Below the pieces are notes generated by a model. The model was not told where the DNA came from. It did not search any database and saw nothing but the letters and a program-made list of their open reading frames with translations. A stretch of 64,000 nt of DNA from Klebsormidium nitens. Lineage: Eukaryota; Plantae; Klebsormidiophyceae. The DNA lies in the NCBI GenBank assembly GCA_000708835.1, contig DF237091.1, forward strand, positions 62,001 to 126,000. The letters are read 5' to 3'. A program made the position numbers and the translations under genes. Within the stretch, counting starts at the first letter, position 1. Each line of letters begins with the position of its first letter. Below are positions 1-61,500 of the stretch, piece after piece.

Positions 1-3000
1 CTGCCGTCCGATGTCGGCTCGCTCTCGTACCGCTTCTTCTTCTATGCGGCCAGGTGAGATGCAAACGAGTGGTATCCAGAGAACGGCAGCCTTCGAGCTG
101 AGTCTTACAAAACGTTGAAGGACGTAAAGAAAGTCAAGCATCTGTTTGTGGAAACCTTTAGAGCTGCTCGTCTTTCCAGATATAAGCACAGTCGTTCCCA
201 TTTCGGACGCTTTTGTTCGTCCAATCTGTCAGTATTCCACCTTATGATTATTCCATATGGTTCTGACTTGTATGGGAACATGATATACAGCTCAAAGGAG
301 AGCACCAGAGAGGCGTATATAGAGACAGGGGGGTCATCGATGTAATCCTTTCTGCCTCCTCGCAGGGTGGCGTACCTTCTCTTCTCCACCTGCTCCTTCA
401 CGCCTGCGGTGCTACCCCTGGACGAGCGCCGCTTCAAGATCGTCTTCAAGCCGCTCGTTTCGTCAGCCGCGGTTGCGGAACAGCTCGAGAGCGTGAGAAT
501 TTCTTCGAATTCAAAACCTGAGCTTTTGCGTATGCTGCGCAAGATGGTCAACGATGCCTTCGGTATCGTTCGCTAGAGTCTCCCAAGGTTTGTTGCCTGC
601 AATTTCCTGAAGGAACGACGACTCCTCACATTGCCTGCCAGTATTTTCTGGATTGATTCTCGACGATTCTCAACCGCATTGGCCATCACAGCAATTTGGA
701 AGTCCTGCTCAGAAGTCATTTGTCCGCATTCCGTTGCGAACAGCATTCGCCTCGTCCTTGACAAGGATGATTTGAGTGTGGATTCATTGCGAAGCCTTCT
801 ACCTTTTCCCGTAACGCTTTTCCCGGTTAATGGCCAGACCCGAAGTCTGTTTCCAGCGGGCTCGTGGGTGCATTGCTTGCGCCCCCCCGTCATCTGCACA
901 AGAAATAGTCACTTCCATAGCGATCAGACCCACTTCTTCGGCTCCAGACAAATCAACCACCGATAACTCGAAATCTGCATGATCGCTGCAGCTGGCTGCT
1001 GCATACCCTGCAAACGACCCGTGCGTCGTTCTTGATGGGGAGGGCCCCCTGGCCGCCGAAAGCGGCACGCTGCACTGCGTCATGGCGGCCCTCACGCGGA
1101 GCGTCGCCAAGCTGGACTTCATGCACAAAAAACTCAAGGTGGGTGACGTCCTATCTTAGCCTATCGTTGAGCTTCTCAAGAGCGGAGGGGGGCCTTTGTT
1201 GAGCAAAGGCGCATGGGCGCGACAAGTCGTAATACCGCCCCTTTCGGGCAAGTTCTGATCGTTGTGGAGGAACTCGACTACTGCTTACCAAAAATGAAGT
1301 ATTGGTATCCTATCCTCTGACGGGTCCGTCTCACCCAGGAACATGTAAAAGCCGGAAACGAGGCCTCACCTGTAAATAGCCGCTTTGTCAGCAACGCCGC
1401 TGACGTCCTCACGAAATGCCCCCTTCAATTGATTCTGTTCAGCTTGCTTTTAATCAGTCTCGTTATGGTCGTCTTTGCAGGACAACCCTCCCAAGGAGTC
1501 CCTTGCCTTCTGGCGCCAGCAAGATTTCCACATCATGGCCCTCTCGGAACCGAGCACGGCCGCGGCCATTGCCAAGTACTTTGGTACGACCACCACTTTC
1601 TTCGACTTCTGGACCAAAAAAGCTCACCTTTGGCGCCTGAATTCAAGATTCGAAGGCCTATCGTTTGGAAAGTAGGAATCCACGGACTCGCTTCTTCCAT
1701 TTCAAGGATGCGAAACTTTCTACTAATCCAGACTTTGCGCAAAATAACTTCTGAAAGCATGCGGGAAGACGGAATAACCCTCTTGGTGCCTTTCAGCATT
1801 TTTTCGCCTCAAATCACTTGGTGGCCTCTTCCGCAATCTAATTTTCGAGACGCCAACAGTTGTTACGGCCCTCCCGACAACCGACCTGTTCTCTCGCAGG
1901 CCTGTTCGACCTTCTCAAGTTCGACATTGATGTCGAGATTCGGGTGCTTAAGAGCGAGACCGAGGCCCCAGACCCAGCCACGGGCATCAGCCCTTACACC
2001 CTGGGACTCTGGATGAAAAGGTGGAGACAGGCGTCCAATCCTGTGATGGTCATCTTCCGCAAGGCGTCAACCCTAGAAATTGCCATAGACGTCGCAATCG
2101 GTGTTCCTCTTCGAGAACAGAAAGGACTCCGGGTTCCTCGTGAACCTTGATTCAATATCGCGCAAACATAAATAATCTGAAACTGTTTCCTGAGCAACTT
2201 GCCGCCGACAAGAAAGCGTCTCAGCAATCGTGTCGGTTCTTGACTCTCAGGAAAGACGCCGGAGGAGAGCATGCTCCGCTTCACAGCTTCTTTCAGCAGA
2301 ACCCAGACAAGAAGGAGCAGGTGGGTCACTCTCGAGCGGTGTTCTCTCCTTTCTCCCCCACGCCATCTTCTGTATCGCTCTGCCCAGAGAGGCTCGCGCT
2401 GAGGGGGAAAAGATAAAACTCTTCTCTTCTTCTTGAGATTCTCCAAGTGCGAATTGAAATCAAGTTACTGGAAGACGAGAGAACCAAATCTGTGCCTAAT
2501 AGTTTCAAATCCAAACTCTCTCCATTCCGTTGCCCAGGTGCTGAAGTTCCTATCGAGCCTGGCACCATACTTGGAGGGCATCGAGAAGCTGCTGATGCAG
2601 GCGAGCATCCCGCTGCGCGGATCCACCTTCGAGACGTTCATTATCGACACCGCGTTGCTGCTGGCCAACCTGGGTATCTCGGTTGCCCTACCCCGGGAGC
2701 TCAAAAAGGTGAACCTCTTTTCCAGAACTCCAGGGAATTTGGGAATTGGGCAGTTGGAGGGGTGTGGGAGTCTGTGCTGAAGTCGCTTGGACTTGCCGCA
2801 CTCTGGCCCGGAGGTTGCATCCGAGCAAGGTTGCAGGTCGTCTTTCTGATTCAGAGTTTGGAAGGCCGTTCAAAACTCACGAGGACGTCAAACGGATACA
2901 TGTGAATAGAGAGCCCCCAATTGCTGAATGGATCTAGAAAAAGCAAGATATTTCTAGTTTCTCCGACCGCCTCACGCTTGTTCAATCTAAGAAACTGATG

Positions 3001-6000
3001 AGAAGCGCGTCCAGTCATGCACCAGGTTTAAAGATGGCGAAACCCAAAAAACCGGATGAAGTGGACTGGGTCACTGCTGTTACCAAATTATGCTGACGAG
3101 CTCTTTGCTTTCGCCCCAAACTTGGACGCAAATAGTCGACTCAAGCTTTGTTATACTCCTAGAATATGAAAAGGACTAGAATATGAAAAGGACAAATACA
3201 CAATAAGTTTACTGGGGACCAAAGTGAGATCGTACTGGCTTTTCCGTTCTGCAGATCATCCGGCCCCGCGCTGTCGTTCGAGCAAGCGGCCGGGACGGCG
3301 ACGCGAGCAACAAGTCGCACCAGTCCTACCTCATGCTGCCGCAGCTGCTGACGTATGACTGGCAGGCAAGCAGACTCAATCTTGTCCTTTTCCGTATCGC
3401 TCGCTTTTCCTGCCAACTTCCCGCAACGTTTCACAGGCTGATTACCATTGCTGGACTCTGAATTGCTATTCTGCAGTTCGCATAATCTGCTGATCTTGGT
3501 TTCCGAGTGCGAAACGAGCATACTAAATCCCTACCTCGCAACTTATGAGGTATCAGTGCAGTAATGTGCTTGGTCTATAATTCTGGCCCATTTTTACGGG
3601 TTGTTCCAATCATGTCCAGCCAAGCAACCTGAGCAAGAATTCAGAGTCGAGTAACTCAGAGTGACCGCGTTTGTCCTTGAACTTGCAGATCGCAGTTGGG
3701 GACGTGGTCATCACCGTCGCGGACTTCAAGCAAATGGTCAGGGAGGGGCGCAAGATCATCCGCTACAAGGACGAGTAAGTTAAGCACGGATGTCGTAATG
3801 CTTTCAACTCGCAAATTTCGATCTCCGACTTCCTTGGCCCCACAGCTTTGGGTACAGTTTAGTGCTTCTCCTTGGCCCCACAGCTTTGGGTACAGTTTAG
3901 TGCTTCTCTTTCAGCAGCCGTTGTGCGATCGGCCCGGGACGTTATTTTCTTCCGACACAAGAAAGACACTTGGCCGGTTTTCCTTCCGTCCAACCGATGC
4001 TCCTTTAGCTTGGAAAGAAACCCGGTGCTTGAAACGGCGAGTCAGACACAGGAAGTCACTGCTGAAGTGGTCGGGGGATCCAACACGCAAACCTCTCTAC
4101 ACCCCTGTTTATGCGCACTCCACACCGCCCGCAAAGTTCATGAATGCTCACAGAGAAAACCAGAACGGAGTGGGAGGATTTCTGGTTGATTTCCATAATC
4201 CAAGTCAACCCTGACCATCCTCTTTATAACTCAGGTACGTAGCGCTGTCGTCGGAAGAGATCAAGGCGATGCTGGAGCAGGTCGCCAAGCCGGTGCCCCG
4301 CCTGTCCAGCTCCGACCTCCTGAAGGCGTCCCTTTCCGGCGACCGCGCCGTCTGGCTGGACGCTGATGTGACACAGCTCCTGGCGGGAATGACCCGGAGC
4401 AAGGAATTCCCGCTGCCGCAGGGACTGCAGGTTGGTCATGCTCACCCAACCAATTTGAAAGGAGTTCTTTCAGAATTGTCGCGGACCTGTATGTACCAGG
4501 TTCTTCCAAACGAGAAGTATGAGACTGTTGAGATATGTAGTGGCAATAGGAGTCTATCAAGGTCATGCAAGCCAGCAAATATAGATTGAATGGCAGCCTC
4601 TTCTGCACAGCAGTAATCGAGAGGTGAGATGTTGGAACTGTTCAGAACCTTCCTTCCTTAGTAGAAAGCGACCGTCAATCGAACACCCCGTAGCTCACTT
4701 GTAATTGCGTTGCAATTCTTATGGCGACCTGAAAGAATGCATTCTGACTGGCTGAGCAGGCACAACTGCGCGAGTACCAACAGAAAGGCTTCTGCTGGCT
4801 GACGTCCATTCTGAGCCACGGCTTTGGGGGCATCTTGGCGGACGACATGGTGAGACTTCACGCCCTTCTCTTTGCGGTGTGCTTACGGCTCATCTCGATG
4901 TTCGTTTGCAACTCGTCTTGATTCCATCCGACCAGGAGATTTCAACGACCGAGTGACCTGGCAAAGCACTGGCGAGTGGAAAGCCGCCCGGAACCGTCAA
5001 CATTAGAAGAGTAGTACTACAACGACGAGAAAGGGTGCGGTCATGCGAAAAGCTTCTGAGAGTCCGAAGAACGACGATTCAGCCGACTTCGTTGGTTGAG
5101 CGTTGGATTCTTGGACAGGCATATCTGCTTCATTCGCCTCTTCACAATAGGAAAGCGCGCTGCTTTCTTGTTAAATTGAGAATATTATAGGCGACAACAC
5201 CGAATGGCGCGCTCTGCGCACATGTCTGTAGGCATCTGCGCGCCTCTTTTAAGGCCTCCAGTCCTTATCACAGGGTCTCGGCAAAACCATCCAAACGATC
5301 ACCGTCCTGCTCCACCTGAAAGAACGCGGCCAGCTGACGTCACCGGCTCTGTTGGTTGTGCCCACTTCGCTCATCAGGTGAGAATGTATTCCCTGGCTGC
5401 TCCTTTCTATCTACTCTCTCCGGGAGCAACAGCAGCTTCGACGTTTACACTCATTTTTGGAAACGAAAAGATGCTGTGAAGGTGCATTCGACGCGATCGA
5501 TCTTGTGCATGGTATAGTGACATCTTGTGCATGGAACATAGTCTCAGCACTTCCGCCTCGCTTACGAGCAGCCCACAGAGCTTGGTCCTTCGCTCTTCCC
5601 TACATACATAGCTAAAACCTTCCGGGCAATGTCAGATTGATCGCGCGTCCCAAAAGCTTACGTCAGCAAGGCAGCGCTCAACCTTTTAAGTTGCGCTTTT
5701 CGCCGTCTGACTGCATGTGACCACCTTCTACCGCCACAATCGGGAGCCCCTTGAACATCGACCAACGCTGGTTTTGGCTGAACCTGTCTGACACCCAAAA
5801 CTCTTTTCTGCTCGCAGCAACTGGGAGAAGGAGATTGCGCGCTTCGCTCCCTCGCTCCGCGTGACCACCTTCTACGGCGGCAACAGGAAGCTTCAGAGTG
5901 TCGACGCCAACACCGGCGCCGTTCAGGCGGCGCGCGCCGCGGGGCCAGACAGCACCAAGAAGGCGCGTGTGGAGGCCGCCGCTGACGTCATCCTGACAAG

Positions 6001-9000
6001 CTATCAGGTGAGCTCTAGAATCGGGTCGGTGCGTTGGTAGTGCGGGCGAGGCCAAACCGGCCCGCTGCAGTTGGTAGTGCATCCGGGAATGCTTGGTCGA
6101 TCCTGAATTGTGAGGTGCTTGAAGACGTTACACTACTGGTTAGGGGGAAATGGAAAGGTTTTAAAAAACGACTTCTCGGCGAGAAGTCAAGGGGCGAATC
6201 ACAGCAGCGGTCATAGCCGCTGTTGCTTCAAGAGCCAAACTGCTGTGTGGCGCGCTCGCTTGAGTTGTCTAGCGCTCGACGACCCGGAGTAGAACCGCGG
6301 CCGCTGTTCATCAAGCGGCTGTGTATTGAACTGTTTTGTCGTCGAGATACGGACTTCAAAAAGTGCTAGAAAGCGTTACATCAGAGCACTATGATGCCTG
6401 ACCGGATCTTCTTTTGATTGTTTCAGTGCATGCGCATCGACGTGGAGGCGCTGCGGAAGCAGCGGCTGTCGTGCCTGGTGATCGACGAGGCGCAGAACAT
6501 CAAGAACAACAAGGCGGCCACGACCAAGGCGCTCAAGAGCATCAAGGTGGGCCCACCGAGGGCCGTTGCCTTGGCTCGTTGCTCCCGCATATTTTGTCGT
6601 ATGTTCCAGCTGTGAGTTGGATGCTGAGCTAGCTCCGATCGTGCTAAAAGCCGAAAGTTGGATCTGAGGAGACAGAGGGTGCGCTGATGATCCAAGTGAA
6701 ACTGTTCCGCAATGAAGACCTCAGCCGAAGGTTTTGTTTGCAGGCCGGCTTTCGGATTGCGCTGTCGGGAACTCCAGGTGAGACTTCAATCACTTCAGTT
6801 GATTTTGCCTGGTCGAGGCACTTCGAATCCTCCCTGGCTTGGAGCCGCTTTCTGAGGGACCGAACATCTTGCGTTTGGCTTGTCAAGTACGTTTCCCTGA
6901 TCGTTCAGAATATCGCAGAAAACGCTGAGCTTGGCCTTTACGGAGAAGAGAATCCATCGTTCGCCTGATTAAGTAGCAATGCGAAGCTGAAAGTCTCGTT
7001 GCTCAGTTGCGCGTCTGTGACCGCGGAAGGTAACTTCTAGATAAAGGCGGTTTGTTCCAGGATCAGAGTGGGTTGGATTGCTGGCCCAGCGAATTGGCCG
7101 ATAGCTCCTTATTATACGGCTAGAATTGCTCGCTAGAAGAGCACTTTGCTCACTGAAAGCATTTCGATCTGCTGGAAGCCTCCGCGAGACTCACTTTCAC
7201 CCCACAGGCGAGACCTCTTAATCAAGTCTACCCTCTGAACCACACTGCAACCCGCACTTTCAACCTCTATCTTTGCCGCAGTTGAGAACAACCTGAGCGA
7301 GCTGCACTCCATCTTCGACTTCGTGATGCCGGGCTACCTGGGCACGCTCAAGGACTTTGCCACCGACTTTTCGAAGGACATCGAAGTCAGGTGGGCCGCC
7401 TGAGGCGTTCTATGCGAAGAAGCCGGCAACTTCGCTGTGGTGGTCTCGGGTGGCTTCTGATTCAAGGGGAGGGCGCAAGCTTGGTTCTCTCAAAGTCAGC
7501 GAGGAGGACCTAGTCGAAAGTCAACACCTTCGCTGAAAGCTGGCACCGTAGCGGAACGAGCTTGTAGTGGGAGTCCTGGAACTTCCAGGATCAGTTGATC
7601 TGCTGACGCCCGTGCTTCTTGATGCGCTCTGTGACCTCTCCGTCCGCTTATCGGCTGTGACTCCGGCAGAGCGGGTTAAATCCCGATTGAACGGGACCCC
7701 TTGAGGATTGCTCCTCAATGCTCTCAACCTCTCAAGCTGAACGAACATGACGCTGATCAAACGCCTTGAAGGACGCACTTGATGACGTCGGCTTCATGTA
7801 AAAGCAGAATTTGCCCCAAGTCCGAGTCGGTTTATGTGATGTTGTGCCACAATTTACGTCCAGGCGCGACGAAGAGAAGCTGGCGAAGCTGAAGGCGGTT
7901 ACGGCGCCTTTCATGCTGCGCCGGCTAAAGACCGACCGCAGCATCATCAAGGACCTTCCAGACAAGGTCCGAAACCCGCTTAGCTTAAGGGTCAAGGGAA
8001 TCTCAGGTTGCTTCCTGCAGTCACGTGGCTGTGTGCGTCCGCTCTTCCAAAGTAAATACCTTCTTAAACGAAAGTCCCCGCCCTGCACCTTGTTGGAGGC
8101 GTCCTATTAGTCAAGGGATGTTGCGTACATTTGGGTGCCGGGGGCGGCGGAGATTTGAATAGCGTCGTTCGAGAAAAAATCTCCCACTTTTGCTGGCTTT
8201 AAATGATCTTTTCTCTCTATCCACTTTCAGGAATTGAGATAAACCAAGTGAACAGAGATGAGTCAGCACATCAGGGTCGAATTGTCGGAGAATGTCGTCG
8301 TTGCTGCTCGCTAATCCTCTTAACTTTTTCTCGACTCCTAAACAGGAGCAGGATTTTAATTTTGGAATCCGAGGTAGGACTTTCACCTCTTTCCCATCAA
8401 CGTCTTCATTTAGAATCCAATAGTTACCCTCACTTTCCTGCTTCCCCTTCCACCAGATCGTATCGGACACGTTTGCGACGCTGAGCAAGACACAGGCCGC
8501 GTTGTACGAAGGCGTGGTCCAGGAAAACCTCGAGAAAATGGCGACCATGGAGCCCGCAGCACGGCGAGGGTGGGCGCCTAACACATCTAGACTCCCCTTG
8601 TGTTCATAATCTTAAGGAGGACCGTTTTCTGAACGATTCCTCCCTGTGTCCAAACACAGAATGGTCTGTCTTCCCTTGGGCTATGGCTTGATCTAATAAA
8701 ATTAGTTCTTATGGTTTTTACATCGCCTTCTTTTCTTAGTCTTTCCCTTTACTAAAAGAGAAATCAGCAGGAAAACCGTCAAGTGTGTCGTGCTGCGAAA
8801 GACGTGGGCTTGCATTTGACACAGGAGTTGGGGTGCCCAGATCCAATACTTGAACACCACAATCACAAGACCTGGCAGTGCTGGCGGTCACTCTTTCAGA
8901 TGTTAGTTTTTCTCCCGAAGACGGCACTCCGTGCAACCTTTTGAAGAAATCAAAGACAAACTAGTATGATGAATCTGCTGGACGACCCCCCGCTTGGCAC

Positions 9001-12000
9001 CAGATTAGACCACGTGCGCACTCGCTTTGTCCGAGCAATTGTCAGCGCATCAGACGGTACTGTCGTGTATCACCGCAGGCTCATCTTCAAGCTGCTGACG
9101 GCGCTGAAGCAGATCTGCAACCACCCCGCGAACTACAACGCCTCTGCAGCGATGGTTCCGGATGACGTAAGCAACTATCTGCCTTATCAGAAAAGCTGCT
9201 TCGAATGGATGTGCGAGAAGGTCTGCGTCTCTTCTTACGCCATCCGTTTGATATCGAGAAGCGAGCTGCCACTAATTCCAGCCGAGATAAGGCCCAGGAA
9301 AGGTGCCTCTAAAAGAACGTCTTTCGAACACTCAGAGCGGTACGAAACTGTGACGAGGTTGACATGGACGTAACCAGATTAGGGCAAGCATGCAACCAAA
9401 CACTCTACCTTACCGACTGGACAAAAGACTTCTTCCTTCTACGACAGAGCGGAAAGGCGACCCTGCTGAACACGTTGCTGGAGACGATCATTGAAAAAGG
9501 AGAGAAGGTCCTCATCTTCACACAGGTGGGCAGCCCCTGTCTCCTTTCCAAATTCGCACCGCGGTTATCGAGGATCTTATGTGCATATCGTGGGCGTCAA
9601 TTTGCTTGCTGCGACGCAAAGACTCTTAAGATATGGTTTCGGATGAGAATTGTCGGACAGTTCGAGAAGGAGAGCCGGTACCTCAACGTCCTGGATAAAA
9701 ATGCATCTCTGGTAAAGAATCTCCTTCAATTGGGGTAAGATACCAAGTTTGCTGTACGGAAACATGCAGAGACAGATACGAGGCTCTGAGGCGACAGAAT
9801 GACAATTTCTTGGGCACGGTTAAGCAACCGCTTAACCGCTTAACCGCTTAACCGCTTAACCGTAGTCACAGTGAATGATAAACGTCCCGCCCTCGTATCC
9901 GATTTCGTCCGCGTCGTCCTGTCGCTTTGCGCCGCCGCACTGAAGCATACTGTTCGGACATTGCAGTACGTCCGCATGGCCCACCTACTGTCCGCCATGA
10001 TCAAGAAGACCCACCTGGTGCAGCCGCTACTACTAGAGGTAAGGAGTCATGATATCGGGTTCACGGACCTTAACGTTGGGTAATCAGGGTTTACCATGTC
10101 TGTGGAAGGCGGTGATCGGGGGTTATATCGTCTGGGCTCAGGAGCTACGTTTGGTAGGATTTGATCAAGCGTAAGCGGTTTGCCCAGCTCTAGATTGATG
10201 GATCTTGGACTTTTGTACCGCCTGAGTGCTGATTGGCAGTCTTACTTCAATGCCTACACCCCGCCGAACTCTCCAGTGTCGCCCAGAAACCGCACTCCTC
10301 GGTCGCATCTCGTGAACCTTCCCGGCGCCCACATCATAGCCAAAGCCTTATGCTAATGTTTTGTAAAGGGTCTGGGTTAGATAACGGTCTGTAGGATTGT
10401 TTTACGGATTCAGGATAAATCAAAGATCGCGCTTGAACCTGGCCGGCACGCAGCAAAGCGAAGCTGACCGCCCGCGCTTTGCTCCTCGCAGGGGTCCATG
10501 TCCAAAGCCGACCGCGACAAAGGCGTGCACAAGTTCCAGACGGACCCCTCAGCGCACGTCTTCATTCTGTCCCTCAAAGGCGGGCGGCGTTGGGTTGAAC
10601 CTGACCGCGGGCAACCACGTCGTCCACTACGACCTCTGGTGAGTAACGCACCGTCCTTCGAGCATCTCTTCACCGGCCTACTGGTTTTTAACAACGGTGA
10701 AGCGAGGGAAATGGAAATGCTGCGTTGCATTTCCGTTCGTTTGTGTGCTTGTTCTTGTCCAACCATTCGACTCACGCTGTGAAACAGAATCCTCAAGCTT
10801 CCGCCGTCTGCGCCGTAAGTCATTTCCCCGTAAACATTTAAAAAGCAGACTTTTCCGGAAGCAGCCAGTTGAGGTTTGTCCTCGGTACGCCTTGGCCGCT
10901 CACCGACCAGATGCATGGTGTACGGATGCACTCCTGTTGTTCCGCATTGCTTACCTTGACAGACCGTAGAAGATCGTCAATCTCCCGTAAAATCGCTCAT
11001 GAGGATGGCATCATATGAACGACACAGATTTGCTTGGCTTCTGAGGGCGCTTGCAATCAAAAACATCCCTAAACCGAACAGGATTCGAGCAACCGTCTCA
11101 AGACATTGTCGGAAGGGTAACGTACGATGAAGCGCCAGTGAACGCCGTACGATCCCATGGTTCTGCTTTCTAGTCTGCCGTATCCCTTGAAAATAATGGC
11201 AAACAAAGTGCTCACGCTTCGTTGCAGGTGGAACCCGGCTGTTGAGGCCCAGGCGACGGACCGTGCCTTCCGCATCGGGCAGCAGAAGAACGTCTTCGTG
11301 TACCGCTTCATCACGACCGGTACTTTTGAGGTAGGCCGCGCCGCCAGGCTGGCTAAACTTCAAGGTTCTGCTTTCCTAACCCAGATTTCCGTTCTTCATG
11401 ACACTTACCGAAGGACAATACCTTCGACCCTAAGCAGTAATTCTTCGTAACAGGCGGCGTCTTCTCTAATTCTTCTACCACTTTCGGGAAGCCGAGAAGC
11501 TCGACCATGTTAGATTCGTCAATGAAAGCGGCATGATTCCGCGGCCCACAGATCCAATCGAAGAGTGGAAGGCGCTTACGGTCATGCGAGATGTTTCAAA
11601 CCTTAAATGGAAAAAGGCGCTGTGCAAAGTCTGTTCAAGGATGCTTTTCACAGTCACCTTTTTCGGAGAAGCACGTGGGTGTTGACTTCACGAGATTCAT
11701 CTCTACCTTCCATAGAAGGTCCGGAATTCCCTGCTACCCTGCACGCGAGTATCTGTAAAGAAACTCAAAGCTAGTCATTTCACGTCTGCCGCGGGTCTTG
11801 CCCAACCCCGTGGTCGGGGAACTTCAGTACGAAGATCCAAAGCGCCTCAATTGAGTTACTAAAGTCCGCAAACTTGCTTTCGACGACGCCAGATCGAGCT
11901 GACGGCACCAAGTCGACGGTCAAGACACAAACGTCACCATCTGAGAGTTGGGCAACCGGCAACCACTTCGCTTATGCAGGAAAAGATCAACGAGATGATG

Positions 12001-12105
12001 TCCAAGAAGAAGGAGCTGTCGGACCTCAGCATGAGCACCGGAGAGAGCTGGATCGCAGACATGTCGGACGAGGAGTTGCGCCAGCTCTTTGCACGCCATG
12101 AGTAG
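1..12105 (+). CDS. Swi2/Snf2-family helicase/translocase of bacterial-archaeal (SSO1653 / SWIM-SNF2-like) type; 5' end lies upstream of the window; 24 exons visible, ~874 aa
   Basis: Phase-consistent exons: 1-53, 366-492, 992-1138, 1481-1583, 1900-2020, 2287-2320, 2538-2708, 3255-3365, 3689-3774, 4235-4430, 4760-4849, 5274-5377, 5818-6007, 6427-6546, 6744-6777, 7282-7390, 7864-7966, 8457-8569, 9079-9166, 9448-9525, 9967-10038, 10492-10638 (one base too long), 11228-11330, 11980-12105 (TAG). The translation shows [20 protein letters not shown] (motif I), VVPTSLISNWEKE (Ia), DEAQNIKN (II), [20 protein letters not shown] (III), [20 protein letters not shown] (IV), [13 protein letters not shown] (V), [21 protein letters not shown] (VI) and C-terminal [17 protein letters not shown]. 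Confidence 0.93.
3159..3192. repeat. perfect 17-bp tandem duplication (CTAGAATATGAAAAGGA x2) in a helicase intron
   Basis: Read directly from the sequence. Confidence 0.9.
3366..3688 (+). other. non-canonical GC-AG intron in the SNF2 gene
   Basis: CAG|GCAAGC donor after ...LLTYDWQ. The exon 3255-3365 is exactly 37 codons and joins in frame to IAVGDVV after TTGCAG at 3688. Confidence 0.75.
3831..3906. repeat. perfect 38-bp tandem duplication in a helicase intron
   Basis: TCCTTGGCCCCACAGCTTTGGGTACAGTTTAGTGCTTC occurs at 3831-3868 and 3869-3906. Confidence 0.95.
9817..9862. repeat. (AACCGCTT)4.6 microsatellite preceded by an inverted copy (CGGTTAAGC)
   Basis: Read directly from the sequence. 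Confidence 0.9.
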
Positions 12106-14209
12106 GGCCCGCGTGTCAACAGTTGTTCCGCTTGACGAGGGTCTGATTGCGCGCACGCGGCCGCGGTTAGACCTAGCATATAGTGGCTCAGCTCTCTCTG
12201 TATCCACCACTCGCGCCAGGATTGCTTCAGAGCCACTCGCGCCGGAATTGCTTAGATAGCTGACACGTGTGCAACGGTTGACCTCACCGTCATTATCACC
12301 AGAATTGGACTTATAGCTCAGTGACATTTGCGTCGGACTTGACTCAGCTGAGTAGTGCCTTTGACTCGTAGCTCATCACTTTTCAAGTTGCAAGTTCACC
12401 TCTGCTAGCTTCCTGGCTCAAGAATACTGGCACCCGGAACTGTGGGCTTGGGAGCTGACATTAGCGGACAAGCATTGGACAAGTGTGGAGGGCAACCTCG
12501 ATTGTAAGTCCGATGAGCTGCCAGGGGACTGGCCTGCTTTGTCTTCCATCCACGGGTGGTGACCGAAGTGACTCAAGTCCAGGCATGGCAACGTACGTGG
12601 TGTGTGCTTGTAATTGCCTCTGTCGTGGCACATATGGCTATCCCTTTGCATAGCACTGAGTCAATTGTGGACCATTGAATGGCATGGTCAATCAAAGTAC
12701 ATGGATGGCCCCAAGAGTAAGCGGGGCGGGTAGAGTTCAAAATTATTTGTTGCGACGTCATGTCGAACTCGGAAAGCCATGGATAAGCGCCGGAGCCATC
12801 ATAGGCCGGGCTTTAGCCGGGCTTATAGGCCAAGCATGCGTCTAGCCGGAAACACCTGAGATCCGGCAGACGGTAGCGACGTTGCGCACGGTATCCCTGT
12901 CATGCAAGGGCGTGAGACTTGCGACGCCTTTGCGAATGTTCGCGTCATCATAAGGGCGCATCGGAAGAGGTGGAATGAATTTTGATCGCTTGACTCGGCC
13001 GCATCTGGCTCTGCCCGCACAACTTACCTTGCGAGCTCATCAGCATTGTTGTCGGCCATTGCCCAATTCGTGACCCGAAGGGATCATTATATACTGTCCC
13101 TGTAGCATTATATATAGCTGTACCGTGCATGAGCCGGCCGGTTGCCTGGGCCCTGGGGTATTCATATGCATCTTCCTTCGACTGGGGCCCCAATTAAAAG
13201 TGCACATATCTAGCTAGCTCCCGTAGCTTTATTGACTACCGTACACAGTCAATGAACTATATCAAAGGTGCAAGTTTTATACCATCTTTTTGGAGATTAA
13301 ATCTAATGGTCAACCAGCACTGGCGCACCTTTAACTCAATGGACACCAGGAACGAAGAGCCTGCCGCTGCTTGAAGGCTAATATTCACGCATGGCTATCG
13401 CCAGTGCCTACTAAGGGACTCATGCTATTTGTCAAAGAATTCACGCACTATCTTGAATTAAGTGAGGAAGCTCTGTTTCATATTTCTTGGGACCATAACA
13501 ATCTGTAAAGTTCTGAGCATTTGACTTTGATCAAGAAGCTACTTGAGCTGCTCTGAAGCTAGACCGTGAGCAAGCATGGTCAACAATGATTGGTATGACG
13601 CGTTTTGATTCCGCGTCTTATCCTTCCAACAACGCAATCTGAAGGACAAGACATGGGCGCGATTGTGCTTTCAAATCAACGGCACGACCAGAAATAAGAA
13701 AACCAGACTCGGTGTTCTGGTGATTGCGGGTAACAAGCTTCCTGCAAAGTCCTGGTCCTGTAAGATCTAGCTGTAAGTGAAGTCACAACTTGAAGTAATG
13801 GACAATTGAAAAGAGACTGAAGTTGCAGCAGGCTGTGGGCTAATAGAATCGTACCAAACACTTCATGACTCCAACGAGAACTAAGTCAAGCAGGACAAGC
13901 AGGTGGCTTACTTGTGGCTTAGCCCTTTAAGTTCTCAAAGTGGTCAGTGTGCCCTACTAAAGCAGCCCTCTAGTGTTACCGTGAGTGTGGCGTATGAATT
14001 TCTGAGCATTGGTCGCCTAAATGGGCTTCAACTGCAACTTAGACTCCTCAGGCTACCGTCTGATGCTACTATACAAGGCTCCTCGTTAAACATGACACAT
14101 GTGCCAATGACCCTATGAAATTCTGATTGTGCAACTCAACATCAGCATGTAACTCGCGGTTGCCTTGGCACTCTGACATACTTCTATACTTCCAGCAGAT
14201 AAACCATTC

Positions 14210-23528: not shown

Positions 23529-24143
23529 CTTGCGTGCCGCAACTTGTACTTTCCAATTCCTGAACGGCGTATTTCTTTGTGGGAAGATGTTTAATTTCAG
23601 GAGAAAATGTAAGTTACAGAATGACAAGGACACTCATCATCCTTTTGACAACCAAGCTGCCAGTACTCGGGCGATCGACCAATCTCAATGGCGCCCCTTC
23701 AACCTGTGCTTGCCCCTCGGGAACTTGGCAATGGAAGCTGAATCGCTGTCGAAGACGACAGTCCCTAATTGCCTTGCCTGGTCACGTGCTTCAAGTTGTT
23801 GCTCTCTTTCCCTCTAGAGCGAAACCCTGGCCCTGACCCTGGCCCTGAGACGAAAGAACCGGGAGTGCCGTAGTCGGTGTTACCGTAACTTGGTTGATAA
23901 CCCTTAGGCTTGGATCACGGGTCCTACAGTCCTTTGCAGGAGGCTTCAACTCAGCAACTAATTCCGGGTTAAGTCACTACCGTCAAGTTGCTGGTCGGGG
24001 GTACCTTTCCCGGGCTTGCCATTCCTGGAGCGCCACGCAAAAGCAGCTCTCGCAGAGCAATCTCTCCCTCTTTCAGGCTGGGCTCCTTGGCAGCCAGTCC
24101 TTGTGCAAGAGGCGCTTCTGCAGGGGGCTCTCAGGTTGCAATC
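23529..24143. promoter_or_regulatory. probable bidirectional promoter and 5' UTRs between ATG3 and RPS2
   Basis: Head-to-head start codons ~615 bp apart. A pyrimidine tract near 23800-23815 and an AAACCCT telo-box-like motif at ~23822. A likely 5'-UTR intron of RPS2 ends at CTCTCAG (~24134). Confidence 0.5.
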
Positions 24144-26384
24144 ATGGCTGACGCGCCAGCAGGCGACCGCGGGGGCTTCGGCCGGGGCTTCGGCGACCGG
24201 GGTCGCGGTGACAGAGGCCGTGGCGACAGGGGCCGCGGCGATAGGGGCCGTGGCAGGAGGGGGCCCAAGAGAGAGGAGGAGGAGAAGTGGGTGCCTGTGA
24301 CCAAGCTCGGGAGGCTGGTGAAGGAGGGAAAGATCAAGTCCCTGGAGCAGATTTACCTCTTCTCTCTCCCCGTTAAAGAGCACCAGATTGTGGAGTTCTT
24401 CCTGGGCCCTGCGCTCAAGGACGAGGTCATGAAGATCATGCCTGTGCAGAAGCAGACCCGCGCCGGGCAGCGCACGCGCTTCAAGGCCTTTGTGGTCGTT
24501 GGCGACAGCAACGGGCACGTCGGGCTTGGTGTTAAGTGCTCCAAGGAAGTTGCTACTGCCATCCGGGGCGCTATCATCCTGGCTAAGATCTCGGTCATTC
24601 CTGTGCGGCGGGGCTACTGGGGGAACATGCTCGGAAAGCCTCACACTGTACCCACCAAGGTGAACGGCAAGTGCGGGTCGGTAACGGTGCGGCTGGTGCC
24701 TGCGCCACGGGGGTCCGGGATTGTCGCTGCCCGTGTGCCCAAGAAGGTGCTGCAGTTTGCCGGTATCGACGATGTGTTCACATCGTCTCGGGGGTCCACC
24801 AAGACGCTCGGAAACTTCGTCAAGGTGGGTTGGACTGAAGCTGATTGCCTGTAGGTTCAGTTTGACAAATTTAAATTGCCGCGGCGCAATTGCATGGAAA
24901 GCTATGAGACCTCGGTAAAGGTTACCAGACTAGCTTCGATGGCGCATTGTTGCACCTTGTTGGTCTGGGAATTGCATTGGGGCATTGGGAATTGTTGCAG
25001 AGTGCATTCAAGGGTTTAATGGCTGGAGTGGTAAAGGTTTTCGTCGCAAGTTCAGAGCCCAATTTGGGAGCTTGATGAAGTGTCAGAGGGCTTTGAATGG
25101 AAAAATTGGCAATGATTGGTATAGAGACCATGCAACAGAGACCATGCAACCGTGGACTTTGTATGTTATAAAACATGGCAATCACTTTTGATACATTGCT
25201 GGAGCTGCGCTTCTTTCAACAGCCTGGATTCTTCTTTAAACCCTTTTTAGACGCGTTGACATTTCTCATAAGCTGTTGAAGCCTCCCTGTCGCTGACGGT
25301 ACAATGAACACTCGGAAACTCTCTACGTCAATCCAAGATGCAGTGTTCTTCGAGAGCACTGCACTTGTTGGACAGTCAGTGCGCCAGCTAGTCATTGGAG
25401 TTTTGAGCGCCAGATTGTTGCACGCCTAACAGTAGGGAAGACTGTGCTGCTTATGGTGCCCAAGTGTGTGTGGACAGGGCTCACGTACTGCAGCGGTGTT
25501 AGGTTAACTGAAAAGTCGCGAGCTTTCCTGTGAAAGTCACATACGTCTGAAAACAGTTAAAGAAGGCTCTTGCAAAAGTCTAGCATGGTCGTCCCGTTTT
25601 GCTGGTCTGCTGTGGATGGTTAGGTTCAGTCCGCAGTTGTCAGAGGCGTGCTCTCGCTGGGCCCAGCGGATGGGAAGCATGTTTTGCTGTTGTAGACTAG
25701 TTCTAGGAATCGGCTTCTCCTCCGGTGCATCTGGAGTGCCTGCGGTGGCTTTTACAACAGAAGGAGGATCTCGCAGACTGCAGATTAGCATTGTTGTCGT
25801 GTGGGACCGTTTTGAAACGTGCGTGGCAGTATTGGGAAGCGGTAACTCATACACTGTCCAGTTTGCTGCGGAGTCTTTTGAATGGAGAATTTCGTGACTG
25901 GTTCTGGGGTAGACAGACAATTAGCAAGAGAAGCTTGTCGAGGTGGTATTCCTTGAGATGTGCCGTTGAACCGGGCGAGGAATTCGCGAGCCATGTTCAG
26001 AGTCGGGGGTGGGCAAAGTTGACTATGAGCGATTATGTTCAGTCAAGACCAACCTGGTTCATGGTGTCTTTTCTGGAGGCGCGAGCCTTTCTCATCCTTC
26101 TTTTTCTATGCGTCCTGTTGCGGATGCGGACTTCTGTCTGCATACAAGCAATCGTGGATCAGACTTTCCATCAGTCATAGGGCAGTCGAGCTAACCTGAA
26201 GTCCGTCTCTTTTCTCCAGGCCACTTTCCAGGCCCTTCTCAAGACGTACTCCTACCTCACCCCCGACCTGTGGCGCGAGACCCGCTTCGTCAAGTCTCCT
26301 TACCAAGAGTTCACTGACTTCCTGGCCAAGCCCAACAAGATCGCAGTCATTGAGGACCTTGGTGTCGAGAAGAGCGCCTACTAG
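24144..26384 (+). CDS. RPS2: 40S ribosomal protein S2 (uS5), 2 coding exons, 281 aa
   Basis: Exons 24144-24824 and 26220-26384. RG-rich N-terminus, [36 protein letters not shown]|[15 protein letters not shown]. Confidence 0.98.
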
Positions 26385-55500: not shown

Positions 55501-58500
55501 ACCAGCCTTTCTCCCAAGCACTGTTCTTCCGGCTCTCCTCGGAGTTAAGCACTCCCCCCAATCCCTCTTATCCAATCACATCCGAGCAGTCTGCCCCTCC
55601 CCCGGGCACTCTGCCCTCTTCCCCCGGGCACTCCACCACTTCCCCCGCGCACTCAACCACTTCCCCCGAGCACTCAACCACTTCCCCTAGTCACTCACAT
55701 CCATTCTGCGCAATCTCTGCCCCTTCCCCTGAGCATCTCATGGGTCACTAAATCACTCATAATAAGCTGAACTTACAATGAGCTCAAGTTCTAGTCTTGG
55801 AACGGGTAGGATTAGAAAGGGAGTTTAAGGTGGGCGGAGCAGGTAAGGCCAGCAAGTGGCCGGAAATGGCCGGAAATGGCCGGAAATGGCCGACCCTTCT
55901 TCAAAAGAGCTCAAAGGGGGGAGAGAGGCTAATGTTAGGGTTCGGTCTTAGCTTCGTTCATACTATCAATTAAGCTTATGACGATTGTCCCAAAGAGATT
56001 TTGAGCACTCCGCCACTTTGCCCAAGCACTCACATCCATCCTGCGCATCATGTCGACCGTGTTGGCCAGGCGCGTCATCGCCTGCGGACCCAGGATCTCC
56101 GTCCGCAGCTCGTCCGGCGTGCAGTCCCTAACCCGGGCGCCGTTTTGGGTTAGCTCGTTAACCCGCTCCAAAGGCAGCGCGGAACCCACGATCTTGATGT
56201 AAAGTTCGACGGGCATGTCCCGCATGATCTCCAAAATGTTGATCCACTGGTCACCCTACAAACAAGCAAATTATTTGTTTGGAAACCGAAAATTTGGATT
56301 CAACAAGAAAAGTGTTGTAAGGATAAAAAGTGGGCGGATCGGACTTCTCCTGTCAGCCTCTTGGTCTCAGAATCTTCTTCGCGCTTCACAAAAGAAGATC
56401 CTAATCCATAAAGCCTAAAAAAAAGTGGTCAGAAGAAATTAGTCGCGTCAGGTCTCTCGTATTCCTGCAAGAATTGTCACGACGGATCGTGAAATGTCAC
56501 GACCAACGTTATTCTGCGGTGTGCTTCTAAGTTCGTTCACTCACAACTGAACTCCTTCCGTTCTCCCGGCACCTACATCAACTACCCAACCTCGTCACGT
56601 GGACTGAGTATGCACCTGCCAGAGGCAGAGAATTGGACTTTCGCATCGCTTTGGACTCTACATGTGGCGACGTTTTGGAACCGCAAGAATATTGAACCAG
56701 CTTTGAAGGAAGATCGACTTACTCGGTTTCCGTTGTCCCCCGCCACCATTGGGTTTGAGTTCTCATCCCGTTGCACGCGTTCGACTGCCGCCGCAACCGC
56801 TCCTTTCAGAAGAGCCTCCCCCGCAGAAGCAGCCCTAAGGGCCTGTAAGAATGAAGTGACGGTTGGGTTCTTGAGTGACACAGCCATTTGGCTGACGTCA
56901 GAGCTAACATCAAGCTGAAGCAGCGCGGCAAGCAGTTGAATAGGTTCAGTGAGGTTAGGATTGAAGCACGATTGACACGAACTTGGCGACTCGGAAGCAA
57001 CGTCTATTTAAGAACGTCGGAAGAAAACCTCAGAAAAATCACGCATAAAGTCTCTTGTTGAACGATCGAACGGCCATTTTGTACCGAAGCCTAAAAGAGA
57101 ATCCAAGACAGAAGAGGACGGGATGTTGGATCCCTTGAAGCGAAGATTGACACAAGTTTCAACGGAACCGAGGATTTCCAAGCTCAATAGCCAAGAAAAG
57201 AGAATTCCAAACAGTACGCAATTTTGGCACGAGACTACCAAGAACACTCGATACCGCAAAGTAAAGCATTACCAGCCTCGCAACAGCAAGCAAGCTCAGT
57301 CTTTCCCGCAAGGCTTGACAATCAACTTCCACGCGGAACCGAACACTTACCGCCGCGCCGGATGCCCCCCCGGCAACCACCTTGAACCGCAGGTACTTTT
57401 CCAGCGCCGACTCCTGCTCCGCCTTCGCGCCTTCCACCAGTTTCTTAACCCTCTCCACAACTTCTTGCGCCGCCCCTAAACCTTCGCCAAAAGCCGCACG
57501 GGGATCCTTAACCGAGGGCCTCATTCCCCGAACCTTCCCGGCCCACACTCCTGAGCTGCTCGGAGGAACGACATTTGAAGGTCCCGGTTTAGAGGATTTT
57601 CCTGCCCGGCCCCCAGGGCGTTCCCCCGACCCGCTGACGTCATCCAATTCCGAAACGCCTCCTTCCGCGACTCGGGCCCGTGAGTCGCCGCCAATCTCAG
57701 GACCCGCTGCCGCTCCCAAAGCGTCGCCACCTTGACCAAGGAGGTCCGGAAACATGCCGACGTCAGCATCTACGTCTGCCACGTCAGCCGGGGCTGGCTG
57801 CCCCTGACGAGGGCCTGTTGCTCCGGCCGCAAATTCTAGAGCTGGCGCATCTCCGCCGAAAACGGCGCCTCCGATGCTGACGTTACCGCCCAGTGCGGCC
57901 CGCGCCAGGCTCTCCCGGATGCTCTGCAGCGTCTCGTACACGTCCGGGCGGCAGATCCGCCCCACCGGCCGATCGAAGTCACGTGCCCGCTTGGTGACGT
58001 CAGCAGCGCCTTGGGATTGCCGTTGCTCAGTGCCCGGAACTTCGCTGGCAGTCTCTCGATCCTCCGCTGGGGTCCCTGCCTCTCCTTCGACTGCCGGTTC
58101 GTTTGCTTCCCCGTCACTAATGGGCTCCGTTCCCGTTTCCAAACCGACGGCTCTTCCATCGGCCACCGCTTCGGTCTTGTTCGCAGCAGGATCCATTGCG
58201 GCCGTCACTGGAGAACCGAAAACGTGTTGCCAAAGATACAAGTGCAGCGCGCGCGCCCGGAGCGCTTTCGAGTACAAGTACCCGTTGTGCTTCATCGCGT
58301 TCTGCATGTCCAGGTTCTTCTCCGCCGCCTCTCGTTTCCGCTGATGCAGCGCCTTGTAGTTTTCCAGACGCTCCACCGTCACCGTTGCCGGGGCCGTTAC
58401 CGCCTTCTTCGTCTGGAACCCGGTTTGGCGGCTGATGCGCTCGACTCCCCGGGCTGTCTTACCAATAAAATCGGCGAATTCTTGGTCGGGCTCGAAGTCC

Positions 58501-61500
58501 CCGGGGATAACGACCTCTACCGGTCTGCTTTTCGAGGGATCCCCCGCGTCTGGGACGGTTATCAGGACGCCCTTGACGAGGCCCTCGGTTTGGAGGTCGG
58601 TTAGCGTGCGGGTTACGAGCTTGAAATCGAGCGGCTTGTCGCGCCCCATCTCGAGGGCGAGCCACCGGCTGAGGGTGCTGCGGATGATGAACTTGTCCTT
58701 CTGCGGTTGAGAAAAGAGGAGATGATGATGCGGTTTTCAAAAAAGGACTCGATTGGAATGATCAGCGTGTTGGCAGAATCTGAAATTGCGTAGCAGTTTC
58801 AAGCCATCCCGAATCCTTTGCCGTTTCGGCGAAATCGGACAACATTGAACGCCTGTAGCTTGGCAATAGCAAGGGTTTCGACACTGAAGGCAACGTTATG
58901 GAAGAAAGTGGTGAAGACATCGTCCACATGGCATATTGCGTTTGAGGACTCAGAACCAGCTTCCGTTCATCATCTGGCCCTTGGAAAGAGAGCGGCAAGC
59001 CATCTACTCAGGTCAGAAGAACCGTCACACCTTAGACTGCCATACTGGTCGTAATCGCTGTACTCTGTTTTTTTATAATTGCAGGCGACTTGAATCGAAG
59101 CGAGACGTGCTCGACAAAAAGGGTGCAATCTGCACAAACCCAACGCCGAACTCTGTGCCAGCTATGAACCTCCAAATGCTTGTGGCAAAGTGACCCCCTC
59201 GCTGTAGCTGTTGCTCATTCCTTGCAGACAGAGTGCGCCAGCAGCACTGTGGGGAGCACTGGAAGCTTCGTTTTTACCAACGGATCAGAGCAGACAAACA
59301 CGAAATCGGAAAGGCTCTCCGTTCGTCACCTCAAGCTTCTTCATAATCAGCTCCTGCCGCACGCGCGCGTCGCTGGTCACCATTTTGGACGTCCGCCGGA
59401 AGCGGCTCACGTGCGGGCCCTGTCCGAGCCCCTCCTGCTCCGCGCCCTGGTAAACAACCAGCGCCGTATCGCGAGCTCCTTCACTCACAGGGCCTTTCGC
59501 CGAGCTTTCCCCCTGGCCGCCACGTGTCCCCTCCTCTTGCTCGCCACGCGTTTGCTCCTCCGTTCTCCCAACTTCGGCTCCCTCCATCTTCTCATCGTCC
59601 ATCCCCCTCGTTTCCGCTTCCGGGGGCGTCTCCGCCCGCGTCTCTCTACCCCCCCGCACGCTCTTCTCCGCTTCAGGGGGCTCCTGCGTCTGCTTCTCCG
59701 GCGCCCCCGGAAAGTTCCCTGCCGTCCACAGACGATAAAGCACCGCTTTTTTGAGCGTCTCCGCGTGCTGGACGATGCTTCCGCTCTCGATCAGAGTGGT
59801 CGACCATTGCGTGTTGTTCTTCCGGTTGAGGTGCAATCGTTTCCATAAGTGGTTGGAGCGAATGCCCTCCCGCCCAGCATCGCGTACGCACTCGTAAATC
59901 TGTTGGTCGACCGGCACGTCGAGGACGACGCCCTCGGGGCCCTCTTCTTCTTCCATCTCGTCCTGCAAGAGGAGTATTCATAGTCCTTAATCTTTCTAAG
60001 ATGGCCCCAATTGAAAAATATAAATCAACTAGAATCACGAGAACTCTGGAAAGTATGCTCAATCGACCGGCACGTCGAGGACGACGCTCTCGAGGCCCTC
60101 CTCGTCTTCCATCTCGACCTGCAAGACAATTTTCTGTATAGCTTTTGAGTTCTCGACCCGCAATTTTGCTCGCTGTCTGTATTGTGGAGTATTAAAACTG
60201 ATGGCATAACGAACGCCCTGTGACACCGTTTCGACCGGCACGTCGAGGACGACGCCTTTGGGGCCCTCCTCTTCTTCCATCTCATCCTGCATGAGGAAAT
60301 CTCCATTAGACTTAAGTTTCTCCGAACTCACTATCTTTTCTACGGACCTACATCGACTTGAATGACGGACACACTGGTAGAGCTTGTGTCGACCGACACG
60401 TCGAGGACGACGCCCTCCTTTTCCTCTTCTTGTCCTGCAAGCATATGATGCAAGTTCGTAAATCTGAAATCACCCGCAAGCTCAGACTGCTGTTGGGATA
60501 GAAGGGTCCTGAATCGACGGCGGCCGCGCTCGTAGCTGTGATGGTCGATGAGTGAGTCGAGAACGACGCCTTTGGGACTCTGCTGCTTTTCCACTTCATC
60601 CTGCAAGAGGCGCTCTAGTGTGCATCCATTTTCTGAACGGTCAAGATTGTAAACGGGAAGCAATCCGCGGTCTGCAACGAGAGGCTTTGTCACAACGCCC
60701 TCCTCTTCCATCTCGCCTCGCAACTGTTCCCAGTGCCCTACGATGTTGACAGAAGGGGCGACAGCAGATCCGGTGGCAACAATCAAGGCCACATTCTAAA
60801 CAAGAAAAGGGAGGGGCGAAGCGGTATATTTAAAGCATGACAAAATGAGAGAGCGTTTAGACCCATTGTTGGTGTTTCAACCCGTCGCAGACCCCTGATA
60901 TACGTCTCGAGCATGCGGAAGTGCGAACAACACAGCGAACGATTAGCGCGCACAAACCGAGACTTTCGTCCGGCGGCTTCAGGAACCCCGACTCTACGAT
61001 GTCCACATACTAAAGTAAAATTCCAATAACGAGCTGTAGTTTCAGTTGGCCAACCTCCGCTTGGGGCTCAAACATCACCCAAAGGAGGAATCAGGAACTT
61101 TAAGAGGCCTATTTTTATTTTTTCATGAAAAACCGTCCTTTCAAGTTTCAACCTTTAAGACACCGGCCGGCACGGGTGTGGCGAGAGCTTGACTCAGCGT
61201 ATTGCAGAGTAGCAAAGCAGTGTAGTTCACAGCTGACCTAAGCATGCAAAAACCCATCCGATTCGAAACCAGCTTGCCATGATCCCCCAGTCAACAAGAT
61301 CCTCACAATCGTTGTACGAAGTCCTCTGTGACAGATGCGAAGCTAGCTGACTTTGTGGCTCACAAGTCCTTCAAACTTATATTTCTGATTCAACCCTAAA
61401 CGCTCACCTCCGGCTGCGGCTCGGCAGCCTCGTGGAAGCCCCTCTTGAGCTGCAGGCACGCCTTGGCGCGCCCGTTCACCTCCGCCTGGAACTGCCGCAC

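Follow-up and report, generated by a model that had tools for sequence, protein, structure and literature searches.

An intron-bearing Snf2 ATPase gene of bacterial type in the alga Klebsormidium nitens carries a frameshift in motif V

A family of bacterial proteins of about 1175 amino acids (aa), represented by those of Aquimarina, Saccharicrinis and Plebeiibacterium, combines a SWIM finger, a DUF3670 domain and an Snf2 motor. Its members are annotated as 'SNF2-related protein' or 'DEAD/DEAH box helicase', and in the literature we found no assigned function for the bacterial SWIM-DUF3670-Snf2 family. Here we analyse a relative of these proteins in a eukaryote. The window is a 64,000-nucleotide (nt) stretch of contig DF237091.1, and we read positions 1-12105 of its + strand as the 3' part of a nuclear gene of the streptophyte green alga Klebsormidium nitens; our literature search found no paper describing this gene. 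Its predicted product is colinear with the bacterial proteins from DUF3670 to the last residues, at 45-49% identity over about 620 aa. All Snf2 motifs occur in both, and the length of the algal mRNA fits a protein of similar size. The algal gene differs from its bacterial counterparts in being nuclear, in having at least 17 introns, in an insertion of ~25 residues in exon G and in a reading frame that is broken in motif V.

Among solved structures, the best match for the bacterial relatives (443 bits) is the core of Sulfolobus solfataricus SSO1653 (PDB 1z63/1z6a), which is also matched by algal exons Q and K. The solved fragment comprises the motor only, whereas the algal family adds an N-terminal DUF3670/SWIM module for which we found no solved counterpart. 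The SSO1653 core is a translocase core that binds double-stranded DNA (dsDNA) (PMC1616948). Among eukaryotic remodelers, ERCC6/CSB and Mot1 have the motor type in common with the alga, and exon J matches ERCC6, Rad26 and Mot1 best; outside the motor they show no similarity to the alga, whose N- and C-terminal regions follow the bacterial family. Flaus et al. in 2006 are said to have included ERCC6 and Mot1 in an 'SSO1653-like' group of Snf2 subfamilies. Bacillus subtilis YwqA, which carries a SWIM finger, and Escherichia coli RapA (HepA) are bacterial translocases of the Swi2/Snf2 family. YwqA is among the enzymes reported to interact with RNA polymerase and has been called poorly characterised (PMC7385302).

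Structure, transcription and bacterial affinity of the gene

Three-frame translation of positions 1-13000 gave a + strand chain of short coding pieces that carry the Snf2 motifs in order. We placed 18 exons (A-R) and 17 introns on this strand between 2490 and 12105 (Table 1), with the Snf2 ATPase core ending at the stop codon 12103-12105. Motif I is divided by the intron 4850-5273 into ADDM and GLGKT, and motifs I, II, III, IV, V and VI follow one another in exons E-Q within SNF2-rel_dom and Helicase_C, as in members of the Snf2 family; motif V is interrupted by a frameshift. Pfam positions 1 to 240 of SNF2-rel_dom match six colinear pieces between 4748 and 8107 (exons E-K). DUF3670 (PF12419, 'SNF2 helicase protein') matches at 3665-3775, directly upstream of the Snf2 domain; the single-exon PF12419 matches, in exons C and A, score below the Pfam gathering cut-off. 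NCBIfam, a library restricted to bacterial and archaeal families, matches the exons to bacterial Snf2 models up to the last residues of the protein.

The gene is transcribed as a spliced mRNA of ~4.5 kb. We aligned contigs of four public runs to positions 6300-12250 (5951 letters). Runs X5 and X9 come from different studies of the window's organism and were guessed to be RNA, X3 is a DNA run of the same organism, and X10, which carries another organism label, was guessed to be DNA but its contigs are spliced, so that it is in fact RNA. One long contig from each of X5 and X9 (2500 and 4501 nt) skips ten intervals with GT..AG ends, and these spliced contigs from two studies define ten joints between 6546 and 11980. 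The 6007/6427 junction is fixed by the loose end of the RNA contigs, which brings the RNA-backed junctions to eleven. On the 4501-nt contig, 3172 nt lie upstream of 7279 and about 240 nt past 12250, the 3' untranslated region thus extending beyond 12250. From this extent we estimate the mRNA at about 4.5 kb, a length suited to a protein of roughly 1200 residues.

Exons upstream of 6007 were placed by homology together with splice signals. The six junctions between 2708 and 5818 follow homology and AG/GT signals, with a GC donor at 3366 (CAG/GCAAGC, after exon B) that is the sole non-GT donor among the 17 placed introns; two of the six are also backed by exon-versus-intron conservation in a genomic contig of a close relative (L001). 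A profile hidden Markov model built from proteins of the bacterial clade described below (the clade HMM) places exons A-D colinearly at family positions 506-711, with expectation values (E) of about 1e-6 each, and has two weak colinear matches upstream of 2490, at 370-507 and 1508-1582. By this measure the window would start near family position ~330, and the part of the gene that it holds would encode positions ~330-1178 of a protein of ~1200 residues. Because the SWIM of the bacterial relatives lies at residues ~125-170, any SWIM finger of the algal protein would lie upstream of the window. The initial annotation had described a complete Snf2 core in 24 phase-consistent exons. Every peptide that it quoted is present in the translation, and the core and 18 of the exons stand; the roughly six further exons that it claimed in 1-2490 remain unverified candidates, and the phase breaks at exon 10492-10638, which has one base too many and needs two reading frames.

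For comparison with prokaryotes, we sampled bacterial members by scanning one genome per prokaryotic species with the open reading frame (ORF) piece of exon Q, which returned 80 loci, and joined exons B-R in silico into a 623-residue model for local comparisons by BLAST, HMM and tree, marking the frameshift with X. From residue 1-3 to residue 618-620, the model aligns with ~1175-aa Bacteroidota proteins, among them those of Flavobacteriaceae, Marinilabiliaceae and Lewinellaceae, with identities of 44-47.5% and scores of up to 566 bits. Cyanobacterial and Methylococcaceae members are 38-40% identical to it, Bacillota members 37-40%. The best bacterial relatives carry SWIM, DUF3670, SNF2-rel_dom and Helicase_C. 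A word search with one of the relatives (L002) opened a family of at least 8000 clusters, in which the 120 members nearest to L002 are all of Bacteroidota type and 45-49% identical to the alga, none above 49%. With all 120 listed in this range, the search brought up no close donor. For L002, the ESM Atlas returned exclusively bacterial clusters. We found no conserved gene neighbours across the bacterial clade, and hence no operon-based hint at function.

A maximum-likelihood tree of 73 rows places the alga inside a clade of 34 rows with a Shimodaira-Hasegawa-like approximate likelihood ratio (SH-aLRT) support of 100. Among the members of this clade are 26 Bacteroidota, 4 Methanobacteriota and a single row for each of Babeliales, Fidelibacterota and Pseudomonadota. 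This position bears on an endosymbiotic origin, in which the gene would descend from the cyanobacterial ancestor of the plastid. DUF3670-Snf2 proteins do occur in Cyanobacteria (for example L070), and the NCBIfam sll1366-family model matches exon E. Against such descent, the identity of the alga to cyanobacterial members is 38-40% versus 45-49% to the Bacteroidota-type clade, and the two clades are separated with an SH-aLRT of 100. Constraining the alga to group with the 14 cyanobacterial rows, a set named after the tree was seen, lowers the log-likelihood by 194 units and is rejected for the sampled cyanobacteria by the approximately unbiased test (p-AU 5e-52). We give next to no weight to a plastid origin.

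Descent from a eukaryotic Snf2 subfamily (ERCC6, Mot1, SMARCAL1) by vertical inheritance, with the bacterial look due to convergence or to conservation of the motor, had to be weighed as well. In the exon-by-exon search of solved structures, exon Q matches 1z63 best and 1z63 is the single match of exon K, while the best structures for exon J are those of ERCC6, Rad26 and Mot1; an 'SSO1653-like' group is moreover listed among six Snf2 groups in a summary of the Bargsten paper. The ATPase core of L002 scores 443 bits against SSO1653 (1z63) versus at most 249 for ISW1, ERCC6, INO80 and other eukaryotic remodelers, and Pfam detected none of the accessory domains of the eukaryotic subfamilies in the algal product. 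The motor by itself would be insufficient to decide. What mainly excludes a eukaryotic subfamily is the bacterial similarity over ~200 residues of DUF3670 and linker upstream of the motor (exons A-D), and the shared C-terminal tail. Vertical descent within such a subfamily therefore seems most improbable, and the evidence supports an ATPase of the bacterial SWIM-DUF3670-Snf2 type, probably with a motor of the SSO1653 kind, and not a plant remodeler.

Several observations weigh against this assignment and against the transfer that it suggests. The branch of the alga is long (1.21) and lies where the tree does not resolve the order within the clade, which leaves the donor without a name; the bacterial members were sampled via one conserved exon, a biased choice; exon J has its best matches among ERCC6, Rad26 and Mot1 structures, and exon H has none. 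The tree was also built without any eukaryotic Snf2 sequence. The exclusion of the eukaryotic subfamilies thus rests on the DUF3670 region, on end-to-end colinearity and on the transitive comparison through L002. Within these bounds, the prokaryotic SSO1653/SWIM-SNF2-like type and the Bacteroidetes resemblance proposed in the initial annotation hold up: the DUF3670 region and the colinearity speak for the former, the identity of 45-49% from end to end and the place of the gene inside a Bacteroidota-dominated clade for the latter.

The frameshift in motif V and intact relatives

Exon P can be read in its first frame up to ..FILSLK (10576-10578), and from AGGVGLNLT (10580) onward in the next. 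Exon Q joins correctly with the second of these frames and not with the first. The extra base is present in all contigs of X5 and X9 (RNA) and of X3 (DNA) that cover the site, and this agreement means that it is real in DNA and mRNA and not a slip of the assembly. Read straight, the mRNA would add 25 wrong residues and end at the stop 11243-11245, which lies 85 nt before the last exon junction; the product as encoded is without motif V, motif VI and the C-terminal tail, and the gene has no intact ORF. The copy in the sequenced strain is most likely a recently inactivated allele, with a predicted loss of function. The initial annotation had spoken of a domesticated helicase that may now act in the cell, which for this strain fails at motif V, where the frame is broken in DNA and mRNA alike. 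Two points limit this reading: contigs drop rare variants, and a minority of frame-correct transcripts is possible; and the runs of the window's organism may all derive from one laboratory strain.

We also considered that a full-length protein might still be made by a +1 ribosomal slip on CUC-AAA-G, with the Lys-tRNA re-pairing from AAA to AAG. A shift at exactly this point, between AAA and G, would restore the motif V of the family, and the mRNA, although its premature stop precedes the last junction by 85 nt, is found in several RNA data sets. Against recoding, AAA is followed by no stop or rare codon that would pause the ribosome (the next codon is GGC), and the relative has the plain in-frame sequence, so that the extra base looks fresh and not like a conserved recoding site. 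We regard such a slip as very unlikely, and inactivation of the allele as the reading to keep.

An intact version of the gene occurs in X10. This run holds two versions, one at least 99% like the window, extra base included, and one about 90% like it with the frame intact; the two contigs of the latter kind, from the organism of that run, are one base shorter at 10576, so that their frame is restored. The two versions could reflect a mixed sample, cross-contamination or two gene copies. Some joints differ slightly in the ~90% version, as at 9162/9448, where 4 other letters lie between. Among the 35 coding differences listed between the window and this organism, 29 are synonymous and 6 non-synonymous, and 30 of the 35 fall at codon position 3; these counts span both sides of the break and are valid only in the corrected frame. 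Past the break, all six differences within exon P are synonymous in the second frame. That the 29:6 pattern continues on both sides of the break marks the lesion as recent.

A second comparison covers exons further upstream. In L001, the genomic contig of a close relative, exons C, D and E are 91-94% identical to the window (91% for exon C and 94% for exon D), versus 57-67% for the introns between and flanking them. This contrast dates the intron-bearing gene to before the split of these algae. Judged by these substitution patterns, the gene is shown to have evolved under purifying selection over its whole length, and the intact protein would therefore have had a function in the lineage.

Acquisition, distribution and predicted function

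Since the best matches of the gene are bacterial, bacterial contamination or a chimeric assembly was a rival to transfer. It is refuted by the at least 17 spliceosomal introns with GT/GC-AG ends, whose removal is seen in RNA contigs, by the plant-lineage nuclear genes on the same window and by the matching exon-intron structure of the relative. Two of the neighbours encode the cytosolic ribosomal protein uS5/S2 (RPS2) and the large subunit of TFIIIC (Table 1). The best named relatives of the uS5 piece are from Chara braunii, land plants, Closterium and Mesostigma, which supports a nuclear genome of the green-plant lineage. With its introns, host neighbours and spliced RNA, the gene is integrated in its host.

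For a true intron-bearing nuclear gene of bacterial affinity, horizontal acquisition is the best reading: the gene is nested with support in a prokaryotic clade, it is spliced and it has nuclear neighbours. The initial annotation had arrived at the same explanation. Direction and donor are drawn from sequence comparison. The gene would have originated as a bacterial SWIM-DUF3670-Snf2 ATPase gene with an SSO1653-type motor, most likely from a member or a relative of the Bacteroidota-dominated clade, and after the transfer would have acquired a normal load of spliceosomal introns. Purifying selection would then have kept the intact protein functional in the lineage until a single base inserted into the motif V exon of the sequenced strain shifted the frame, which removes motifs V and VI and the tail from the encoded product. 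We consider it likely that this explanation as a whole (a bacterial gene, transferred, intronised, selected and recently frameshifted in this strain) is correct.

The distribution of the gene among eukaryotes was approached through exon D and through synteny. A full-library search with the 65-aa exon D, in a library that includes plant and charophyte proteomes, gave one true relative, a 95%-identical read-through ORF of a close relative (P0001), through which L001 was found, and 13 chance matches to repeat proteins. Exon D is too divergent to reach the bacterial family, and the search excludes fairly close orthologues only. A tblastn search of plasmids with exon H gave no match. A search with uS5 brought up a more distant relative in the form of a 101-kb metagenome contig (JGI metagenome 3300060284, Ga0590114_0001155), with exon DNA identities of 77-90%, which we examined over 45 kb (record 16272-61656, L082-L085). 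It has its gene order in common with the window from 18134 onward (compared to window 18134-24829), and upstream carries a multi-exon EFL1-like GTPase gene (GTP_EFTU) on the minus strand. In the 17 kb between the EFL1-like gene and the shared downstream genes, tblastn with the model found no Snf2 exon, and the bacterial-clade profile had 0 matches versus 20 in the first 13 kb of the window. Nothing in these 17 kb corresponds to the window, be it the Snf2 gene or window 12.1-18.1 kb. The absence can mean a gain in the lineage of the window, a loss or a relocation. The exon D search reached a near relative only and the gene is absent from the syntenic locus of a distant one, so that its distribution may be patchy.

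These data bear on an alternative in which the gene is an ancient, vertically inherited bacterial-like Snf2 lineage of eukaryotes, widely shared and not acquired in the Klebsormidium lineage. Its intron density matches that of native genes, its intron positions are common with the relative, and the alga is about equidistant (45-49%) from the sampled bacteria, on a long branch. It must also be counted against a lineage-specific acquisition that the eukaryotic distribution is known from the exon D search and one syntenic locus only. Speaking against an ancient lineage, the exon D search gave a single true relative, the 95%-identical fragment, and the distant relative keeps the flanking EFL1-like and downstream genes with a 17-kb interval free of Snf2 exons. 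Surveys of plant Snf2 genes place essentially all of them in eukaryotic subfamilies (PMC3842944, PMC10589754), and among the plants of one Snf2 database a single one is credited with the SSO1653 type (PMC10589754). On balance we find an ancient shared lineage unlikely and retain horizontal acquisition. The initial annotation had called the acquisition old: it does predate the split from the close relative that shares the introns, but the distant relative is without the gene at this locus.

The intact product would probably act as a dsDNA translocase that displaces or remodels DNA-bound proteins, an activity predicted by analogy because the SSO1653 core is a dsDNA-binding translocase and YwqA is among the translocases reported to interact with RNA polymerase. 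In this model, ATP-driven movement on dsDNA would remodel DNA-protein complexes under the guidance of the N-terminal SWIM/DUF3670 module. The intact translocase might act in an organelle of the alga, for example on the bacterial-type plastid RNA polymerase or on the nucleoid, which would match reports that RapA and YwqA act on RNA polymerase or interact with it; we hold this speculative idea to be quite improbable. If it were true, the reference strain would be a natural knock-out, and the role could be tested against relatives with an intact gene.

The gene is not a new kind of system, and transfers of genes from bacteria to streptophyte algae have been reported before (PMC9667741). We take it as a genuine bacterium-to-alga transfer, previously undescribed and broken in this strain. 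A large bacterial DNA-motor gene (~3.6 kb coding) would have entered a streptophyte alga, gained at least 17 introns, probably more than 23, been kept under selection and only recently been disabled by mutation in the reference strain. Every intron would be younger than the transfer, which makes them a set of intron gains dated by necessity. The broken copy would also offer a natural null allele for asking what the bacterial SWIM-DUF3670-Snf2 enzyme, with its thousands of bacterial members, does.

Feature coordinates and minor observations

Table 1. Exons of the Snf2 gene, the frameshift and neighbouring genes in the window
Feature	Coordinates	Strand	Evidence
Candidate upstream exon	370..507	+	clade HMM positions 336-381, weak, E 0.56
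Candidate upstream exon	1508..1582	+	clade HMM positions 438-462, weak, E 6
Exon A, DUF3670 region start	2503..2708	+	clade HMM 506-582, E 8.6e-7; Pfam DUF3670 9-39, weak; tblastn with bacterial proteins
Exon A ends	acceptor ambiguous: 2503 or 2538; donor GT at 2709	+	sequence
Exon B, DUF3670 region	3255..3365	+	clade HMM 581-617, E 5e-4; GC donor at 3366
Exon C (IAVGDVV..RYKDE), DUF3670 core	3689..3774	+	PF12419 68-102, E 1.8e-4; clade HMM 611-644, E 1.7e-6
Exon D, DUF3670 end and linker to ATPase	4235..4430	+	clade HMM 644-711, E 1.8e-6
Exon E, Snf2 domain start, first half of motif I	4760..4849	+	Pfam SNF2-rel_dom 1-26; NCBIfam bacterial Snf2 models, E 8e-9
Exon F (GLGKT..), motif I/Ia	5274..5377	+	Pfam SNF2-rel_dom 27-63, E 3e-7
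Exon G, ~25-residue insertion relative to bacterial proteins	5818..6007	+	Pfam SNF2-rel_dom 64-116; 6007/6427 junction from RNA contig loose ends
Exon H, motif II (DEAQ)	6427..6546	+	RNA joint 6546/6744; Pfam
Exon I, motif III (LSGTP)	6744..6777	+	RNA joints
Exon J	7282..7390	+	RNA joints; Pfam 164-198
Exon K (..PFMLRRLK..)	7864..7966	+	RNA joints; single solved-structure match SSO1653 1z63
Exon L	8457..8569	+	RNA joints
Exon M (..LKQICNHP..)	9079..9166	+	RNA joints
Exon N, motif IV region (..KVLIFTQ)	9448..9525	+	RNA joints
Exon O	9967..10038	+	RNA joints
Exon P, motif V, carries frameshift	10492..10638	+	RNA joints; two reading frames needed
One extra base (AAAG within CTCAAAGGCGGG)	10576..10579	+	sequence; X5, X9 (RNA) and X3 (DNA) contigs agree with window
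Exon Q, motif VI; unshifted-frame stop 11243-11245	11228..11330	+	RNA joints; translation; best solved structure SSO1653
Exon R, last; stop 12103-12105	11980..12105	+	RNA joint 11330/11980; NCBIfam SCO1167-family model 888-929 of 932
Cytosolic ribosomal protein uS5/S2 (RPS2)	23973..24851	+	Ribosomal_S5 N and C domains in one exon
TFIIIC large-subunit gene	57162..62109	-	B-block_TFIIIC, eWH_GTF3C1, DUF7599, DUF7646

Elsewhere in the window, a stop-free stretch of 503 codons runs along the minus strand at 42475-43983, where the window is richest in G+C (0.59); Pfam gave no match for it, and it is overlapped by long stop-free stretches on the other strand. An identity look-up of the window ORF 4269-4586 found no record.

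Three observations concern the introns of the Snf2 gene. An ORF piece at 3071-3130, in the intron between exons A and B, weakly resembles the peptide across the F/G exon junction (tblastn E about 0.5-1, clade HMM E 1.2); if real, it would be a decayed copy from a spliced or intron-less sequence, a match too weak to claim. The intron between exons F and G contains a decayed copy, or ghost, of the start of exon G on the + strand at 5689-5775, 144 nt upstream of the original and including a copy of the GCAG acceptor; among the ghost exon copies it is the one that is solid at the DNA level. Its direct repeat (5691-5747 / 5835-5891) is 72% identical, and the whole copy is about 70% identical to 5833-5920. 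We considered whether it is the footprint of intron creation and rejected this, as the copy includes the acceptor site; its form suggests an old tandem duplication that spanned an intron-exon boundary already in place, with later decay of the upstream copy. The intron between exons C and D holds a perfect 38-nt tandem duplication, with two head-to-tail copies at 3831-3906.

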